Of a DNA stretch of 64,000 nucleotides, positions 16,864 through 30,962 are shown one piece after another. The DNA is taken from positions 1,116,001 to 1,180,000 of the forward strand of contig JBNJNM010000013.1 of assembly GCA_052426225.1 (NCBI GenBank), read 5' to 3'. The notes beneath the pieces are model-generated. The model saw only the letters and a program-made list of their open reading frames with translations. It did no database searches and was not told the DNA's origin. Each line of letters starts with the position of its first letter. Position 1 is the stretch's first letter. Both the position numbers and the translations under genes were made by a program. This DNA is from Zancudomyces culisetae HAW-14-8 (lineage: Eukaryota > Fungi > Kickxellomycota).

Positions 16864-17932
16864 TTATTTAGGGGTTGTGGTGGGAAGAGTCTGGTCAAAT
16901 AACAGTTTGTATCCACCACCCTTAAAATTGGTTATAATATAAACTGCATTATATACTGTAAGTATACCACAGATTAGAGATATTTTTTGCATTGTATGTT
17001 CTGGAAGTTCATTAAAGACAAAGGAATTTAAGATGATTGTATTTCCAGAATACAGAACAAAGTATAGTGTGAATAGAAAATCGACACGTCGTACACCTAA
17101 AGCCACAAGCATCCCGAGCATCTTTAGAGTAAAAAGAATAATGACTAGCAGTACCAGGATGTAAACGAAGGGGTTCTTGAAAAATACTGAGCTTTCGCTG
17201 ACTTTGAATACGCTGTATATTATTTTGACTGGTATTATTGTAAATGCTCCAAGAATAGAGCTCGAGATAACTCCATAGATGTGAAGATAGTTTTTTAAAT
17301 CCAGAGACAAAAGGATAAGGGTAATGAATAGAATAAACATATACAGACCAACCACTGTTGTTAACTTTGGATCCGTTACATGTGTAATAAGCAGAACCAG
17401 ATCGACTACTTTTGCAGAATCTAATGAATTTACTACAACTATGATAAGCCCAATTACGCAGATATTAATGCCATATTTTCCTATTGTGTTGACTTTTTCT
17501 TTACATGCAAAAGACGAAAGAAGGTTTCTATTTAATAACCAATTGTTACCATTTAGATTAAAATTAGTGTGCTTGATTCATGTTAAGAGTTAGATAATAT
17601 AAGACGGTATTGTTTTATACAGATATCATAGATACAAATATACAAGTGAAGTAGTGCAAGTACCCAGATATAATTCCGATGGCATAGAGGGTTGATGCAA
17701 GGCTTATTGGTAAAAAATAGTAGCTGATTATGAACAAAAACTCTCCTAAAAGCAACGAGCCAATTCCAAATTTACACAACCGACTTTTAGTGTATTCAAG
17801 ACCGTAGTTTTCGTTGTTGTTATCTTCTGAGCATAAATGCTCTTGGAAGTGTTTTTTAAACAAAACAGAGCTCAGGCCGATAAAAACTCCCGAAACTATG
17901 CATATTAATATTCCTATTATTTTATCACTCAT
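16864..17932 (-). CDS. Divergent NIPA-family (Mg2+ transporter-like) membrane protein, 2 exons (17932-17664, 17527-16864), about 310 aa
   Basis: MSDKIIGILICIVSGVFIGLSSVLFKK matches the NIPA N-terminus. Removing the GTACTT..AATAG intron (17528-17663) joins ...AIGIISG-NLLSSFACKEKVNTIGKYGINICVIG, the NIPA 'LSSxxLKEKL..GKxGC' region, in frame with the 16864-17355 ORF. Confidence 0.75.
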
Positions 17933-19405
17933 TTTTCCAACTTGGTTGCCAAATTATTCTGGCGCATCCCCTGTTGATATCGCTTTATATACTTCCTATA
18001 ATTGAAAAGGGTCGCTGATAACATTAAACTTAAGCTATTTCTATAACTTGATGTCCTTTGTCTCACAGGATGTATTTTTTTTCGAAGTATGACCCCGATT
18101 AAAATGTTGAAGTGCTTGGTGCCAGTGAAAAGTTGTATATCTTCTTATGTATTGTAAAGTAGCCTGAAACAAAAAATAATAATAGATGCTAAACCTGAAA
18201 GATATCAATGCTTTATATTAGAAAAGTGATACACTAATTATCAAAAAAGTTTATATTATTTCTAACTCCGAAACCCACTTTATATTGATATAATGGAAGG
18301 GATGTTATATAACTAAGTTCTTCGCACTCACTAAATCTAGTCCAGTTGAATTTAAGAATACAAAGATCGCTGGCCATTTTGCTTAGTTTTTACACAAAAG
18401 CATTGGGTTCTTTTTACTGCGAGTTTGTTTTCTCGTCGGCTCTAGACACATTTTAATAAAAGTCAGTTGCCAATATTTGAAAATGGCTAGTAACAATGAT
18501 AATCCGAAACTAGTTGAAAATAGTCAACCCGGATATCACTCGCACTTTGTAGAATAGAAATCTGCTACAGGATGGCAGCCTGCTTCACACATTTCCTACG
18601 CATATATATTTTCTTTATCTTTCTCTTATTTTTTTTTTTGCAGAGCGCAAATGTCATTTGGCGACTTTAATATTTTATATGTTATTTCCAGCTTTGCAAT
18701 ACAATATAATCTGCAAATTGCTTCAGAGGGGTGAGAAAAAAACAGCAGTAATCCAATCCTTCATAAAGAAAAAAAAAACTAGGTTCATATTCACTATTGG
18801 TATTTTTTGGGTCTTACTTTAAGAGCATTGGGTACAATCCAAATGATTAATGTAGGGCACACCTTAACTGAGCAAAATTTCAACTGAATGATACAAGCCC
18901 CATACAATAAAAATGAAAGCACCAAAATACTCTACGCTCTGTTAGCTTAGGCTTAAGCCACTGCAGAGGTTAGTAAAGTCAAAACCAAAACCAAAACCAA
19001 AACCGTACCGAATCTTATAGTGCTTGACAAGTATTAGTGCTAATGACCTCAACAGTCCCAAACGATGATACAGCTGCTATCACCTCAAACACAAAGCTGA
19101 TGGGATGGTTCAAACGCTCAGGTTTTTGGACTGTTCTCTGTGCTTTATTTCGGCATCACATTATATAACATTGGGTCTAGATGGTTAGGGAACCTAGCTT
19201 CCTTTAATTATATCCCCCCAAACAAAACGGATATTATTACCCAATTAAATTGTCTTGTTTTTTTTCCATAGAGCTTTTCATTTATTTGCATTTTTATTCT
19301 CAGTCATTGGCCAGCTAGCTTTTTGGCGAAAAAAAATTTTTTTTACATCAAAACAAGCAGAAGGGGATAGGGATGGTAAGGCATGCATTTGGTACTTTTT
19401 TTTTG

Positions 19406-19431
19406 TGAAAATTTTTTTTTTAGCTATAAAA
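19406..19431 (+). promoter_or_regulatory. RRPE-like TGAAAATTTTT (19406-19416) and TATA-like TATAAAA (19425-19431) upstream of the MRP RNA; a second A8T8 tract at 19329-19344
   Basis: Direct motif match. Function is inferred only, and chance occurrence in AT-rich DNA is plausible. Confidence 0.35.
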
Positions 19432-19466
19432 GCAAAATAAAAAGAAAATAATCAGGTTTCTAAATA

Positions 19467-19854
19467 AGAGACAACACGAAGATTCGCTTTATACATCGGG
19501 GTTTTACTTATGGGGTCATCCTGCCTATGGTGGGGTGTCTCTGTATCGACCCTGGGGAAAGTCCCCGGACAAGTTTGGCAGAAAGTGCCAGCCGTAAAGG
19601 TAAACATGCAGGTCTACTTCGATTTCAACCGACAATTCGTTCTCTTTTGGCGTAGAAGTGTGGATGCTTCTGTTTCTGAAAATGGAATTTGAGTGTGTTT
19701 GCACCGAGCCTGGTTCGTTTTGGTTAAGGTTGGGATGTTGTGGAATGCCAATTGTCATAGCAAAGTTATGCGAAATTAGTGCTTTGATAGATAGAGAGTT
19801 TCTCTCTGTTTCTCACGCTCTAACCTCAACGGGGCTTACTCTTGTGTTGTTTCT
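19467..19854 (+). ncRNA. NME1: RNase MRP RNA
   Basis: CR-I GGGGAAAGTCCCCGG (19554-19568) and CR-V CAACGGGGCTTA (19827-19838) form the P4 pseudoknot. MRP-diagnostic P8 hairpin TGGCA-GAAAG-TGCCA (19576-19590, GARAR loop). P1 AGAGACAACACGAAGA (19467-19482) pairs with TCTTGTGTTGTTTCT (19840-19854). P2 TTCGC/GCGAA follows CR-IV-like AAAGTTA. Confidence 0.93.
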
Positions 19855-19990
19855 ACAAACCTAACATACTTTTGGATTTTCAGAAGAGAGGATTATCTTT
19901 CTGTTTGACAGAAAGAACCAATTCTAAGAAAAGTCAGTAAACTGTAAGTACCTATTATCTTTATTTGAGCTTTTATTTTTTTTAAAAATT

Positions 19991-20066
19991 TGCGATATGA
20001 TGTCAGAATTTCTTCACCCGAATTTAATGTGGAACATTTTTCTTGAGCTTTTTAACCCTGATCGCA
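19991..20066 (+). ncRNA. snR47: Intronic box C/D snoRNA, snR47/U36 (SNORD36) orthologue, double guide
   Basis: Terminal stem TGCGA/TCGCA; C ATGATGT 19997, D' CCGA 20018, C' ATGTGGA 20027, D CTGA 20058. Guide GAATTTCTTCAC is antisense to LSU GUGAAGAAAUUC (yeast Am2220); guide GAGCTTTTTAAC is antisense to SSU GUUAAAAAGCUC (yeast Am619). Both D+5 positions pair with A. Confidence 0.9.
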
Positions 20067-20245
20067 TGCCATTTTTATTTATTGTTTTATAATTTTATGA
20101 ATCATCTTGGTTCTTGTTCACATAGCTAACGTTTGAATTTCAACTACTATTTAGTGTGCGTTTGACAAACCTTAAGGCTCTGGCTTTCTTGGAGAATCTT
20201 TTCTGGAAATTCTTTTCTTTTCACTGTAAGGTGTTATAAGAAGCG

Positions 20246-20328
20246 GATAGAATGATGAAGATAAATCAAAGGCTTAATATATGAAACCGTAGATTTGGCA
20301 TTTGCCATGTCTCGTTACTGAAAATATC
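20246..20328 (+). ncRNA. Intronic box C/D snoRNA, family unassigned
   Basis: Perfect C box ATGATGA (20252-20258), D' ATGA (20281), D CTGA (20318-20321) and short GATA/TATC stem, within intron 20226-20389. Candidate guides CAAAGGCTTAAT and GTCTCGTTA. Confidence 0.72.
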
Positions 20329-20558
20329 TCTTGATTTGTTGCTGACTTTTCGCTTTTGTACTTGAAATTTGGTGTTTCAACTATTCCAGAGCTACTGGCT
20401 TACGGTTGGTAAACATCGAATGTTAAGCTACAGCAGTGTATTTCTTATTTTTTTGTATAATAAATCTGACTTTGTGGACTTGCAATTTCCAACTATCAGC
20501 TTTTTGGAGGTAATTATATGCTACTTTATGTACCATTTATTCAATAGGCATTTTTTGC

Positions 20559-20658
20559 TGTATTATTGATGACAACATTTGTTTTCCAGGATAGCAAGAT
20601 AGCTCTCTATCCGATGAGTGAAGCAAATACCTTCTAAGAAGCCCTGAACTTTTATACA
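20559..20658 (+). ncRNA. Intronic box C/D snoRNA, U61/SNORD61-like
   Basis: C TTGATGA (20566-20572), internal hairpin GGATAG/CTATCC, D CTGA (20644-20647), TGTAT/ATACA stem. Guide CCTTCTAAGAAG is antisense to SSU CUUCUUAGAGGG (one G-U); D+5 pairs with U (human Um1442 region). Confidence 0.8.
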
Positions 20659-20804
20659 TGTTTATTATTGACGGTTCTCTTTTTTAAAGAAAAGATTTAC
20701 TAATCTTTCTTTCTTTCTATACAGGGTAGATGACGCAAGGCTCTAGTAGTCGTTGGCTTCAAGCAAAGTAACAAGGTAATTACAATTCACATTATTTGTT
20801 AACC

Positions 20805-20909
20805 TGCCACTAGATGATGTTTTTTAGTTTAATATCTGTCAATCCACTGAAGACATCTGTTGTCTATCATGTTGATTCGTTTTTATACGACCTGTTCTGA
20901 ATTATAGCA
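20805..20909 (+). ncRNA. Intronic box C/D snoRNA, snoR14/SNORD110-like
   Basis: C ATGATGT (20814), D' CTGA (20847), C' ATGTTGA (20869), D CTGA (20897). D' guide ATCTGTCAATCC is a 12-nt antisense match to SSU GGAUUGACAGAU, with D'+5 pairing U. D guide GACCTGTT is antisense to SSU AACAGGUC. Confidence 0.82.
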
Positions 20910-21438
20910 CCATTGTTTACTTAATGAGTTTATATTTCAACGCTTTTCTAATCTAAATTCATTATTTTTTCCATGTAGGTATTTCTCGCTTCCCTTTTAT
21001 TATAAAAATATTGACATTTATATGAAAAATCTTAGTGTTAAATAAACAAAATATCAGCCATACTTTCTTTTCATGCCCTTCGTTTTTTTTTGACAATTAT
21101 AAGCTCACTAAATTTTGATTAGTTTTGCTAATTCACCTGAAACGGCCGAAAGTTAGCCTAAAGCTAGGAAAAAAAAGGCTGGTGACTCATCATCGGCTTC
21201 GATGGCTTTTTCCCAGAAAATCATAATGGCTATGCCACATATATGAGGCTCGTTGTGACACAGAGCAGTCAACTCATAACTAATTTACTGGTCTGTGAAT
21301 GTGTTTTTTACATCATATCTATTTATGCGGTTTTACAAGAAAAAGAAAAGGTAGTAGAAAAAAAATGAGTGATAGTAAGTGTGGTGTACCACACTACAAC
21401 AATGCCATATTTTCATCTGTCAGCTTAGACAGAGCTGT

Positions 21439-25703: not shown

Positions 25704-26702
25704 CAGCTTGGTTTTGGTTTTGGTTTTGCTTTTACCAGTCTGGAAAATACCTAGAAACAAAAGAAGAAAGAAAAAAATTTTTTTTTTGCAAACCTCAATG
25801 GTTTTTCAAAGTTTGATGACTTTGGAGGACGGGATAGAGAGAGAGAGAGAGAGAGAGAAAGTGGGGATGAGAGAGGAATGAAGGAAGAAAGGAAGAGAGC
25901 AAGTGGTATCTGTGAGTTTAAAGCATTTGGGTGATGCAGATTACAAGAGTATATATTTACTATATAGACTCATGTTAAATTAAATTTTGAATTATATCTA
26001 GTGCTTTTTGTTAAAATAGACAACCAGGTAGAGTAGATGTGGTGGTGTGGTGGTGTGGGGGGGGGGGTGAAGGGGGTGAAGGGAGAGACTAGAAAATAAT
26101 AATGTTTACTTGATATGTATTTATATTCAACATAATAATCATAATAATAAAAAACAAATGAGCAAATGAATTTGTTGTACAGTCAACCAAGCAGCCAGCC
26201 AGCCAGCCAGCCGCTTTACAAATTTTTGTTAGGTATATTTTCATGAATTGATGGAATTTTGATCCAGTTTGAAATCAGAAAAAAAAATTTTTTTTTTCCA
26301 GCTAACTATATTTTTGTTAATTGCCTAAAACGAATAAAAGTCTGGTAAAATTATATCGGAAGTTGGCGGTGGTGGTGGGGGGGTGGAGAGTAGTGGGAAG
26401 GGAGAGGGAGAGGGAGTAGTTACGACTATTTTAATTTTAATCATTGTAGGTAAATTTGTGGTAACATAAATGGGAAAAGTAAAAAAAAAAAATTTTTTTT
26501 TTTTTTGCAAAGTTCAAATGTTAAATCGAAAATAAATGAAAAATGAAATAATATACAAAAGTAATAACACTAGGCCACAATAAATCTAGTAAATATAGAA
26601 TCGAGACAAGTCAAAACAAAACAATATAATTCAGAAAAAAAATACAAGAAAATAAAATCAAAATAAAATAAAAGCGAGTAAATAGTGTGTATGCTTGTAA
26701 AT

Positions 26703-29700
26703 ATGGTACACGAATTGAAAACAGAAATAAGGAATATAAAGAACCAAATAACTTTGGCACAGACAAATGTTAAGAAAAGAGCAGAAGTGCTGATAGCCGT
26801 TGAGGAGTCGATAAGAGAGCAACAGAGAAATGCAGGCGAAAGTATAGAAGGAGAAATAAACGCTTCAAGCTATGTAGCAGCATTATTGGCACTGTTGGAT
26901 CAGCAGCAAAAAAACGACATAGAAATACAGGAAGGCAATGTTGAAGCAAACGAGGTGAAAGAGGCAATAGTGTATCTGATTGGAAGGGTAATACAGTATG
27001 TGCCAGAAAAGGTGTTACGCAGCCAATATTTTAGGATTATGGGTATTTTGAGTAATTCAGTAGATTTGAGCAGTGCTACTGAGACTGAATTGGTATCAAT
27101 AATCTCGAGCATGGAAGCTTTGTTAAAGGGTCTGGACAGAAATGGGTGGCAACAGAGTTTCTCGTATAAAGGGTTGCAGGCAATTTTAATAATGTGCTTG
27201 GATTCAAGAGAAGAAGTACACAAAAGAGGAATAGAAGCGGTAAAAGTAATTATGCAGGAGGGATCAAAAGCAAAAGGCAAAAACACAAGTCAATCAAAAT
27301 TGCAAAGTCAACACCCTATGGCAGTTGATAGTATAACTTTTGCAATGGAGATGCTAGAGAATGGACTTCAACAGCAAGATGGAGCGGGTGGTGTTGATAT
27401 AAGACAAGTCAAGTTAGTTTCAGCACTTTGTAGTGCTGTTCCAAAAGAAAAACTGGCATATATGGTATGGAGATTGATGGAGATAGCGACAATCAAAAAT
27501 AAAGAACAACAGCAACAACAACAAAAGAAGCAAAGAGTTGGTGAAAATGGTGTTCATAATGGAGATGCAAGTATTGAAGATGATGAAAATGAAGAGTTGG
27601 AAGAATTGGAAAAGATAGTAGAAGGGCTTATTGAAGGAATCCATCAATTGTTTAAGGCAGCAGTAGAACTAAAAGAAATAAACAAAGTAAAAGAACTTGT
27701 AGAGCAGTTGAGAAAGCAAAAGCCAGGAGCTAATAACAGCAGTGGTGGAGGAAATAGTAATGAAGGGGTGGGAGCGGGTGTAGGCAAGGCGATAGATGCA
27801 GAGATATGGATACGAGTGATGGAGGTGGTGGTTGGAGTAGAATACATCGAGGGTGTAGAGAGTATGGAGTATTTGGGATCAGAGACGGCTGTTTCAGTGT
27901 TAGATGGAGCGCAAGTGTTGAATATATTTAGGGATATGAAGGGGTATTTAGAAACAGGTACTCAACGAACCAAAAAGGCAGCTGCAAAGGGGATGAGGAG
28001 AATAATTCGAGAAAAGATAGTTACCAACTATAGCGGCAATAGCAGCACGAATTTGCAAGCCATGATGACAATGGAACAGGAGATTGGAAAAGAACTGGAA
28101 GAAGCGATGGGATACCAATATAGAAACGAATGGAAGGAAGTGTTCAAGCTAATTAGAGAATACATGTATGTAGGACAGCCATTGTTGCCACAGACAGAGC
28201 CACAAGGGGTTAGTAATGAAGAAGTTAAATCACAAAAGAAAGGATTAAAGATGGTCAAGCTTAGTGAACAAAAGCAAAAAATAATTGAACATGTGGCAGC
28301 GATGCGCGGAGATCTAAACCAGCCGTTTAATGTTCAAAGCGAAGTTGATAACATGTTGACAGCGAGTGTTAGAGCACTGGGACCACGGCAGTTCTTGCAG
28401 GTTCTTCCGTTGAATCTCGAGGCAATATTGACAAAGGATTACAGCACTAGTCGAACATGGGAGTTGCCATTGATGAAGGGAGGTATACAAGGAGCGGAAA
28501 TTGGACACTTTATAAATGAAATGATACCAAGAGCAGACATGATGGGGCAGCAGAGCCGGGAGTTGTTGGTGTTGTCGTTATCGAGTGGACAGGATTCGGG
28601 TAATAACAGCAATGGTAAAGCAATACAGGCAAAAGTGCTCAAAACAATAGAAATGCAGATTTGGGATTTGTTTGTGGAATATACTAGTAACAACCCAGTG
28701 GATGTAGAACAGAGTGTTACTAATGAGTTTATGCAGGAAATGATTAGACGTATTGTAGCAACACCTCAATCTATTGACAACAACAACAACAACAACAACA
28801 TTATTAATGGTAGTGACAATCAATCCATAGCTATGGCTGACGAGGAAACACGTATCAAAGAAATGATTGTTAGTGGATTGAGAGGGCTGGCCAAGTATAC
28901 AAAGACACTGATGCAGTCACAATCCGACAATCTGGGTACTACCAGTAACTGTGTAAATGTGGTGGTACAGACAGCTCCTCAATTGATTTCAATTCTGTTT
29001 AATGAGTTGAATAGCAATGATTCCAATAATAATAATAATAATAATAGTGGTATAAACACCAGAACAATAAATGCAGAGTTGATTAAGGAGACGGCTCGTG
29101 AGTATTTGGGACTTTGTAGCGAGCAGCAAGTTGTAGAATTGTACGGACAGTTGGATTCCATGGTTAACAACAGCGTTTCCAGTATAACCAACGGTGATAA
29201 AGATAGCAACGTTGATCAGGTATTGGTGATACTTGAGGTGTTGATTATTATAGCACCGTATTTCAATTCGGAAATTGCTCAACAAATATTGAACAAGTAC
29301 CTGGTTCTACTAAGTAACTCTGATAGTAGTAGCAGCAGCAATGATTTGTTTGATAATCAAGAGTTAAAAAGAAAGGTTTACAAACTAATAACCGAAGTTA
29401 TTGGCAAGCTGGAAAACCAACCTTTAGTCATCCATGAGGTTTTGAAATCAGTTGTTATTTCCAAAAGTAATGATGCAAGCAATAATGCCTCCAGGAGTGG
29501 AGGGGAAGTATCCTTGGGGTTATCTGTGAATATCAAGGATCGTATAAAGCTGATTACAAAGTTGATTGAAATGCAAATCCATGCTTATTCATCATTCCAG
29601 AATTTGGAGATTAGTACTCAAATGAATAGTGAAGCGGAAACTGTAACCAAACTGCTTATTGGAGAAACAGTTGTATACACCAAAAACATTAACGAAAAAA

Positions 29701-30962
29701 TCCGGGTTTCAAGTCTTAAACTCTTGGAAAATATTGCTAAATTTACTATTCTTCGATTCAATATTGTAAATGGTAGTGGTAATGGAGGACTAAAATGGGT
29801 AATTGATGTAGTGGCTGCAGGTTTAGCTTCTCAATCTGCTGTAATGATATCCGCTACAATCAATAGCATTACACACTTGTTGTTACATTATTACAACGCC
29901 GAAACCAGCGAAAATAACAATAGTGTTGAAGGACTGGCGTATATCAACGAAATCTTTGATACAGTCATCTTGTTCATTACAAAAGATGTTTCTTCAAACA
30001 AGAAAAAGGACGGTAGTGGAAATGTCAAGAATAAAAAGAATGGAAATAAATCCGTTGGCAATGGTAATGGTAATGGTAATTTTGATGCTAAGAACTCGCA
30101 TGAAATCATAAATAAATCAATCCTCAACTTTTTCAAGACTTACTCATCACTTATCAAGACTCAAATTGAAAAGAACCGGCTGATGGTAATGTTGGAATTT
30201 ATAAAAACTCATAATTATGGTAAAGGTAACAAGTACCTGTTGGTAAAATTTATCAAGATCTTTGGTAACGACTACATTTCACCACTCTTTATCGCCCAAA
30301 ATCAGAACCAACCAGGTTCAAATACCCAGGAACTGTTGTCTCACTATAGACGGTTTTATAATAGTGTGGTCAGATTGATGAATCCAAACACCAACAAGGA
30401 TGCCGATACTCTTGAACTCGATAACCTTACTGGTGGTAATAAAAATGGCAAAAAAGAAAAAAGAGATAAAAGAAGAAATGCTCAACAAAACAAACAAATG
30501 CTTCTTGACGACTATATCTCAAATAACACCAATTCCAACACCAACAATGATAATGGTATTGATGATGATGGTGATGGTGGTATGGCTATGGACTTCCTTT
30601 CCAAATCTGCCTTTTCTCGTTTTACAACCTTTAAAAATAACTCAAATAAAGGTTTGTTTGGCAATGACGATGATGGAATCAACATTGATTTTAAAAATGG
30701 CAAACTTGTCGTTCCTAATGAACAACCACCAACAGATAACAATACCGGAAACCAAAATGACACCAAAAAACCATTTTCCATGTCAATGTCAACGTCAATG
30801 TCACATTCAACAAATAAACAACAAAAAGGTGTTGCTAATAGAATAAAAGATGCAAAGAAAAAGAAAAGCGATACACTAAAGAAAAATGCACGGTTCCAAC
30901 CATATGCATACATTCCGCTCTCTGGAAAACCAAACAAAAACAGAAAACTAGTCAAAAACTAG
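26703..30962 (+). CDS. RRP12: Ribosomal RNA-processing protein 12 (HEAT/NUC173)
   Basis: LIAVEESIREQ..SYVAALLALL N-terminus; NUC173-like GPRQFLQVLPLNL..SRTWELPLMK..AEIGHF..EMIP..QIWDLF; VAAGLASQSAVMISATI; C-terminal QPYAYIPL. Start ATG at 26703 (or 26691); many poly-N/Q insertions. Confidence 0.88.
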   Translation: MVHELKTEIRNIKNQITLAQTNVKKRAEVLIAVEESIREQQRNAGESIEGEINASSYVAALLALLDQQQKNDIEIQEGNVEANEVKEAIVYLIGRVIQYVPEKVLRSQYFRIMGILSNSVDLSSATETELVSIISSMEALLKGLDRNGWQQSFSYKGLQAILIMCLDSREEVHKRGIEAVKVIMQEGSKAKGKNTSQSKLQSQHPMAVDSITFAMEMLENGLQQQDGAGGVDIRQVKLVSALCSAVPKEKLAYMVWRLMEIATIKNKEQQQQQQKKQRVGENGVHNGDASIEDDENEELEELEKIVEGLIEGIHQLFKAAVELKEINKVKELVEQLRKQKPGANNSSGGGNSNEGVGAGVGKAIDAEIWIRVMEVVVGVEYIEGVESMEYLGSETAVSVLDGAQVLNIFRDMKGYLETGTQRTKKAAAKGMRRIIREKIVTNYSGNSSTNLQAMMTMEQEIGKELEEAMGYQYRNEWKEVFKLIREYMYVGQPLLPQTEPQGVSNEEVKSQKKGLKMVKLSEQKQKIIEHVAAMRGDLNQPFNVQSEVDNMLTASVRALGPRQFLQVLPLNLEAILTKDYSTSRTWELPLMKGGIQGAEIGHFINEMIPRADMMGQQSRELLVLSLSSGQDSGNNSNGKAIQAKVLKTIEMQIWDLFVEYTSNNPVDVEQSVTNEFMQEMIRRIVATPQSIDNNNNNNNIINGSDNQSIAMADEETRIKEMIVSGLRGLAKYTKTLMQSQSDNLGTTSNCVNVVVQTAPQLISILFNELNSNDSNNNNNNNSGINTRTINAELIKETAREYLGLCSEQQVVELYGQLDSMVNNSVSSITNGDKDSNVDQVLVILEVLIIIAPYFNSEIAQQILNKYLVLLSNSDSSSSSNDLFDNQELKRKVYKLITEVIGKLENQPLVIHEVLKSVVISKSNDASNNASRSGGEVSLGLSVNIKDRIKLITKLIEMQIHAYSSFQNLEISTQMNSEAETVTKLLIGETVVYTKNINEKIRVSSLKLLENIAKFTILRFNIVNGSGNGGLKWVIDVVAAGLASQSAVMISATINSITHLLLHYYNAETSENNNSVEGLAYINEIFDTVILFITKDVSSNKKKDGSGNVKNKKNGNKSVGNGNGNGNFDAKNSHEIINKSILNFFKTYSSLIKTQIEKNRLMVMLEFIKTHNYGKGNKYLLVKFIKIFGNDYISPLFIAQNQNQPGSNTQELLSHYRRFYNSVVRLMNPNTNKDADTLELDNLTGGNKNGKKEKRDKRRNAQQNKQMLLDDYISNNTNSNTNNDNGIDDDGDGGMAMDFLSKSAFSRFTTFKNNSNKGLFGNDDDGINIDFKNGKLVVPNEQPPTDNNTGNQNDTKKPFSMSMSTSMSHSTNKQQKGVANRIKDAKKKKSDTLKKNARFQPYAYIPLSGKPNKNRKLVKN

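Follow-up and report, generated by a model that had tools for sequence, protein, structure and literature searches.

In the fungus Zancudomyces culisetae HAW-14-8, a member of the Harpellales that inhabits the guts of insect larvae, the gene for the RNA of RNase MRP stands immediately ahead of four small nucleolar RNAs (snoRNAs) of the box C/D class, each of which lies in a predicted intron of a non-coding host gene. The locus was analyzed within a window of 64,000 nucleotides (nt) of assembly GCA_052426225.1 (contig JBNJNM010000013.1, positions 1,116,001 to 1,180,000); coordinates given without a contig name refer to this window, and the MRP gene, the snoRNAs and the host are all on its plus strand. 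A single RNA polymerase II (Pol II) transcript very probably spans the MRP RNA and the four snoRNAs, and the mature MRP RNA is likely to derive from this snoRNA-making transcript. Within it, the MRP RNA may make up the 5' portion of exon 1 and bear the cap, a reading that we favor but hold tentatively, at a little less than an even chance. What appears to be new is the joining of MRP RNA to a non-coding snoRNA host; every component of the arrangement has a precedent.

The MRP RNA (about 390 nt, 19467-19855) was recognized by the Rfam model RF00030 over its full length (model positions 1-266), with a match at 19469-19851 that scored 92.1 bits (E = 2.6e-24), well above the gathering score of 50 bits. 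In the covariance alignment and the fold, the conserved elements CR-I and CR-V form P4, a GAAAG sequence of the GARAR type occupies the P8 loop, and P1 is closed by pairing of 19467-19478 with 19843-19854. These are the features by which a complete MRP RNA had first been proposed from the sequence by eye, and both they and the Rfam check suggested at that time confirm the identification. The RNA folds better than shuffled sequences (z = -3.6), contains no internal run of five T residues (T5), and is present in a single copy, as no other MRP RNA exceeded the cut-off in a search of the whole genome. The gene for POP1, a protein shared by RNases P and MRP, was found in the Z. culisetae genome, and a model search of the genome for the MRP-specific RMP1 gave no match with a model for which there was no positive control. 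By its RNA family, the mature RNA would be assigned to cleavage of the ribosomal RNA (rRNA) precursor within internal transcribed spacer 1 (ITS1).

The four C/D snoRNAs that follow on the same strand were also borne out. C and D boxes and a terminal stem are present in all four, the C box being AUGAUGU in two, and in three of them a guide placed next to a box is directed to a conserved position of the Z. culisetae rRNA, or to two such positions. A guide was taken to be an antisense match of at least 10 base pairs (bp) to rRNA next to the D or D' box, and guides were tested against the rDNA of Z. culisetae itself; matches of 11 to 13 bp were found for the U36-, U61- and snoR14-type RNAs. The first snoRNA is a double guide of the U36/snR47 type (19991-20066; Rfam SNORD36 at 19992-20066, 60.3 bits), whose D guide is directed to A621 of the small subunit (SSU) rRNA and whose D' guide is directed to an adenosine of the large subunit (LSU) rRNA, with pairings of 13 and 11-12 bp. 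These targets are equivalent to yeast Am619 and Am2220. The double-guide snR47 has been described as limited to Saccharomycotina among fungi (PMC5824354); the U36-type RNA of Z. culisetae carries both guides. The U61-type RNA (20561-20651) and the snoR14/HBII-55-type RNA (20809-20904) matched their Rfam families below the gathering scores (snoU61, 22.4 bits, E = 0.044; snoR14 at 20809-20880, 24.7 bits, E = 0.035), so that of the three families originally named only SNORD36 was recovered outright, yet the guides of the other two pair with the rRNA. The D guide of the U61-type RNA pairs through 13 bp, including one G-U, with SSU U1455, the equivalent of human Um1442, and adjoins the D box. The D' guide of the snoR14-type RNA pairs through 12 perfect bp, adjoining the D' box, with SSU U1289, and the matching 18S site in Neurospora crassa is guided by CD44 (PMC2780460).

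The remaining snoRNA (20245-20329), second in order along the host, combines a perfect C box with a D box and a terminal stem, and it matches no Rfam family convincingly. Against the last 30 nt of the 25S rRNA it forms 12 perfect and 5 further pairs (-19.5 kcal/mol; shuffle P = 0.018). This match stops 2 nt before an ATGA D'-like box, and the guide at the D box amounts to just 8 bp; comparison with U2 and U6 RNAs revealed no long match. Because the 25S match ends short of the ATGA box, this RNA may act on the 3' end of 25S rRNA as a chaperone element and not as a methylation guide.

The predicted host gene has a simple layout. The U36-type RNA is surrounded by an intron at 19944-20154 (donor GTAAGT, branch GCTAAC, acceptor TTTAG) and, after a 71-nt non-coding exon (20155-20225), the snoRNA without an assigned family lies in an intron at 20226-20389 (GTAAGG, GCTGAC, CCAG). 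The segment 20390-20509 comprises a 19-nt exon, an empty 91-nt intron (20409-20499; GTAAAC, TCTGAC, TCAG) and a 10-nt exon. It is followed by the intron around the U61-type RNA (20510-20724; GTAATT, ACTAAT, ACAG), a 51-nt non-coding exon (20725-20775), the intron around the snoR14-type RNA (20776-20978; GTAATT, TCTAAT, GTAG) and a last exon that carries AATAAA at 21041-21046 and probably ends at approximately 21060. A 60-nt spacer (19884-19943) precedes the first snoRNA intron, and it would be the end of exon 1 or, if MRP were intronic, exon 2. The internal exons thus measure 60, 71, 19, 10 and 51 nt, and their longest open reading frame (ORF) is 19 codons, in agreement with the claim that they encode nothing meaningful.

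All six junctions listed in the original prediction fall on GT..AG, with a CTRAY branch motif 19-44 nt ahead of the AG, and the proposed GTAA donor and branch/YAG acceptor are found around each snoRNA. Each snoRNA is located 26-56 nt downstream of its donor and 68-93 nt upstream of its acceptor. Such flanks occur at 4.0% of random non-coding spots in 213 kb of this genome, giving a joint chance of about 2.5e-6 for four snoRNAs, with a flank pattern that was picked after seeing the locus. Four snoRNAs in a row with intron flanks are far beyond chance. The branch motifs are compatible with the genome's own U2 RNA, and splicing of the host is predicted from these motifs. Learning of splice signals by expectation maximization, run on 264 kb, ended in noise and was set aside, and a coding-score version yielded only nine rough introns, mostly with GTA donors. 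The sequence TYCAACTA stands directly ahead of three consecutive acceptors (20140-20148, 20375-20383 and 20489-20496) where 0.1 occurrences were expected from background; intron duplication or a factor binding site are candidate readings of these repeats.

Transcription of the snoRNAs appears to depend on signals upstream of MRP. The stretch between the MRP RNA end and the first snoRNA donor is 89 nt long and contains no TATA, no A/T tract resembling the ribosomal RNA processing element (RRPE) and no CCAAT. No TATAWAW occurs on the plus strand across 19432-21000, so that the snoRNA introns lack a separate promoter. At the other end of the question, a Pol III (RNA polymerase III) gene would have a T-run right behind the mature end; here the first T5 run, a T8 at 19976, is 120 nt past MRP, while the U6 gene and two tRNA genes of this genome all have T5 or longer within 10 nt. 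Because there is neither a promoter between MRP and the snoRNAs nor a T-run terminator behind MRP, a Pol II transcript yielding the snoRNAs very probably has to run through MRP. This promoter and terminator anatomy gives good support to the single Pol II co-transcript of the original prediction, but placement of MRP within an intron of that transcript is doubtful.

The doubt arises from the region ahead of MRP, which has the organization of a probable Pol II promoter (19170-19431). CCAAT/ATTGG motifs are found at 19170, 19241 and 19306, RRPE-like tracts at 19332 and 19407-19416, and TATAAAA at 19425-19431; relative to this TATA, the CCAAT/ATTGG motifs are at -255, -184 and -119 and the tracts at -93 and -17. 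The same order and spacing (CCAAT, then RRPE-like tracts, then TATAAAA before the first exon) is seen in two other snoRNA hosts of this genome, the U14 host (L055) and the snR76 host (L064), with CCAAT at -225/-186/-138 and tracts from -215 to -11 in one, and CCAAT at -368/-251 and tracts from -120 to -38 in the other. In both, the first donor is downstream of the TATA. The TATAAAA precedes MRP by 42-44 nt, comparable to the TATA positions of U2 (-39) and U6 (about -38) in the same genome. A TATA and tract occur together at 0.2% of random non-coding positions, and the pattern was present 150-190 nt ahead of an ATG in three of six other loci examined.

By comparison, the first donor of the original prediction, GTAAGG at 19376-19381, is situated 49 nt ahead of the TATA, with one RRPE-like tract on either side, where it could be used solely by a transcript begun further upstream; donor-like hexamers are present also in the promoters of the U14 host and of U2. 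The exon 1 proposed there partly duplicates the tract and TATA unit, 19333-19362 being a 77% copy of 19408-19437. An intron-encoded P/MRP RNA should have splice flanks and no promoter of its own; at this locus splice-like sites are present, and a probable full promoter stands directly upstream. A start at the MRP 5' end is favored because the promoter order matches that of the two other hosts, the TATA spacing matches that of U2 and U6, and the previously proposed exon 1 lies inside the promoter. The junction 19375^19884, which would make MRP intronic, is therefore doubtful.

In the scheme we infer, Pol II would start at about 19455-19467 from a ribosome-biogenesis-type promoter, so that MRP forms the capped start of exon 1, and would continue through five introns. 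After splicing of the precursor, four lariats would be debranched by DBR1 and trimmed to the C/D snoRNAs. The MRP portion would be bound by Pop1, and its 3' end generated by cleavage or by exonucleolytic trimming back to the protein-protected P1 helix. Release of this end could begin with an RNase III cut in a stem formed across the first spliced junction; genes for DBR1 and for the RNase III family were found in the genome. The spacer 19884-19943 folds on itself (-13.0 kcal/mol, P = 0.01) and can pair with the exon 20155-20225 (-27.8 kcal/mol; P = 0.026, uncorrected and from mononucleotide shuffles), and this stem is a weak lead. That all of these parts hold together (five RNAs made through a single spliced Pol II precursor, release of MRP linked to removal of the first snoRNA intron, pairing of the unassigned, undescribed snoRNA with the 25S 3' end, and conservation of the layout in Harpellales) is a proposition that we consider doubtful.

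Several observations weigh against an exonic MRP as set out above. GTAAGG on one side of MRP and CCTAAC..TTTCAG on the other have a joint chance of 0.1% under strict and 4% under loose definitions, and an exonic MRP leaves the acceptor behind it without a donor. This branch-like CCTAAC and TTTTCAG acceptor (19860-19883), whose partner donor is uncertain, has a background frequency of about 2.6% (strict) or 12% (loose); it could be due to chance (3-12%), be a relic, or be the partner either of a minor upstream start or of a GTAAAC at 19600 inside MRP. The tract and TATA pattern was defined after seeing the MRP locus and is not enriched genome-wide (22 matches versus 27 for the reversed control), and a TATA at about -40 does not distinguish Pol II from Pol III. 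After multiple testing the cross-junction stem is weak, involving 1 of 21 exon pairs. Finally, the model is drawn from the DNA of one species.

The flanking splice signals raise the alternative of a host begun upstream, perhaps behind the TATA at 19162, whose intron 1 (19376-19883) would release MRP, with both ends of the MRP RNA then trimmed as in the insect intronic RNase P RNA. The donor, branch and acceptor around MRP are strong and jointly improbable as noted, and precedents exist both for RNase P (PMC6797745, PMC4287351) and for the MRP RNA of Cyanidioschyzon merolae (bioRxiv 10.1101/2025.12.01.691491). Nevertheless, we regard this explanation as unlikely: its donor and first exon lie within a promoter matching those of other snoRNA hosts, the TATA and tract ahead of MRP would have to be a coincidence at the 0.2% level, and the branch is just about 9 nt from the end of P1.

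Equally unlikely, in our estimation, is production of MRP from its own short transcript, made either by Pol III up to the T8 run at 19976 or by early-terminating Pol II, with read-through giving rise to the snoRNAs, or else a host that starts upstream and loses MRP in a discarded intron. The absence of a T5 run inside MRP, the T8 run 120 nt downstream, the similar position of the U6 TATA and the synthesis of animal MRP RNA by Pol III (PMC4287351) are compatible with this possibility. Against it, the CCAAT and RRPE-like tracts are of Pol II type, a B box was not found, the Pol III controls terminate within 10 nt, and the T8 run falls within the U36 intron, where T-runs are ordinary.

Quite improbably, two starts might be in use, the proximal TATA yielding a capped MRP together with the snoRNAs, and a start further upstream yielding a form in which MRP is intronic. 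This would account for the presence of promoter signals and splice signals that are each unlikely by chance, and N. crassa cluster V is co-transcribed despite a promoter for each gene (PMC2780460); however, two mechanisms would be needed, and nothing at the locus shows the upstream start. Decay or misassembly that would make the MRP copy or the host a mere relic, as the two snoRNAs below gathering score might suggest, is highly improbable, given that this is the sole MRP copy in the genome and that an independent assembly (GCA_001969505.1) is 99.2% identical with boxes, guides, GT/AG and branch motifs unchanged.

The snoRNA part of the locus resembles known systems. Fungal non-coding hosts such as N. 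crassa clusters I-V and the Candida clusters, together with UHG/GAS5-like hosts, carry one C/D snoRNA per intron between short non-coding exons and contain no ORF (PMC2780460, PMC5033589). The Z. culisetae host differs in carrying MRP, and its set of U36, unassigned, U61 and snoR14 RNAs was not found as a cluster in the available portions of those fungal accounts. Within this genome, L055:900-1950 is a non-coding host with snR107-like, U14 and U49/U65-like snoRNAs, one per intron, and L064:740-2560 (minus strand) carries intronic snR77, snR76, U27/snR74 and snR73, preceded by a first exon of 290 nt. Because these two loci share the layout, a non-coding host with one snoRNA per intron is ordinary for this genome, as it is for fungi. 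The first exon of the snR76 host was considered as a parallel for a structured first exon and rejected, as it folds no better than shuffled sequences (z = +0.93).

Intron-encoded RNase MRP RNA has been reported in C. merolae (bioRxiv 10.1101/2025.12.01.691491), where MRP is likewise tied to a spliced Pol II transcript, but the preprint is silent on snoRNAs in the host, and the Z. culisetae MRP may be exonic. The intronic RNase P RNAs of insects and crustaceans (PMC4287351, PMC6797745) are also P/MRP-family RNAs trimmed from a Pol II precursor under protein protection; they differ in being RNase P, in having a protein-coding host without snoRNAs, and in that MRP remains a Pol III product in these animals. 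A mixed host in Schizosaccharomyces pombe combines exonic and intronic non-coding RNAs in one precursor with a junction-spanning Pac1 site (PMC12508059), comparable to the candidate stem across the first junction here, although the exonic RNA there is a downstream snoRNA, whereas here it would be the upstream MRP and the stem is weakly supported. The 3' end of S. cerevisiae NME1 is trimmed by the exonuclease Rex3 (PMC12129344), as exonucleolytic trimming is proposed for Z. culisetae, but NME1 is a stand-alone gene with a T tract right behind the mature end, and no such tract occurs here. No case of MRP RNA and snoRNAs in a common host came up in the literature searched, where most subscription papers fell outside coverage. 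The novelty is narrower than originally claimed; snoRNA hosts and intronic MRP RNA were already known.

If the arrangement is real, it would represent a third route to RNase MRP RNA, besides the stand-alone gene and the lone intron, and a single promoter would tie the dose of the RNA of the ITS1-cleaving enzyme to that of rRNA methylation guides. It would also offer a testable case for how the ends of a P/MRP-family RNA are formed when it is part of a long Pol II precursor, and the unassigned snoRNA could serve the 25S 3' end as a chaperone or a guide. Its weight is limited by the single, non-model species and by the existing precedents for the component mechanisms.

The locus is bordered on one side by a NIPA-family gene, divergent from it, and on the other by a GNAT gene, convergent with it, and the GNAT protein is identical to one encoded on the older assembly, GCA_001969505.1, with which the identity of 99.2% extends over 3.7 kb. 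Within 19200-21200 the two assemblies show 20 differences, which spare all boxes, guides, GT/AG and branch motifs and are too few for a selection test. The NIPA magnesium-transporter gene (16864-17932), divergent from the host, is split and diverged and was not called in the older annotation; a search with its larger piece gave no relative at E = 0.001. The gene for the ribosome-export factor RRP12 lies on the host strand 6 kb downstream (26685-30962). Its linkage to the host showed no sign of conservation, as the Mortierella RRP12 locus (23 kb) contains no Rfam RNA. A synteny search using GNAT, the NIPA piece and RRP12 returned Zancudomyces matches only, apart from one distant Mortierella RRP12, and a pattern search for MRP and U36 in genome contigs gave no match. 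No adjoining snoRNA was detected by Rfam or guide scan at 18 metagenomic MRP loci, many of them short and with taxa unassigned. Models for U3 and U18 had no match in the Z. culisetae genome.

Other P/MRP RNAs encountered during these searches deserve mention. On GC-rich metagenomic contigs, MRP RNA appears as one exon of 284-286 nt (L021:2649-2927, L022:238-518, L024:683-962, L027:451-731, L028:101-381, L034:1288-1568 and also L018:3769-4050). These loci have a CTGAC branch 70-100 nt upstream, a pyrimidine tract and a CAG acceptor at the MRP 5' end, and a GTATGT, GTGCGT or GTGCGC donor 8 nt past the 3' end. Joining that donor to the acceptor of the same exon would leave P1 closed by a short capped hairpin at all seven loci, three of the contigs being near-identical. 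This makes them candidates for a circular, back-spliced RNase MRP RNA, which was not found in the literature searched and is possibly of more interest than the MRP-snoRNA host itself. At L020:500-600, an MRP gene is apparently interrupted in its 5' strand by a spliceosomal intron (GTAAGT, TACTAAC, TAG), with the upstream exon providing the P1 partner of the 3' end. Lastly, a candidate nuclear RNase P RNA of about 1.2 kb was present in two copies (C19 and C21), at L011:1505-2730 (minus strand) and on L012; because of several internal T5-T7 runs, it is unlikely to be a Pol III product.

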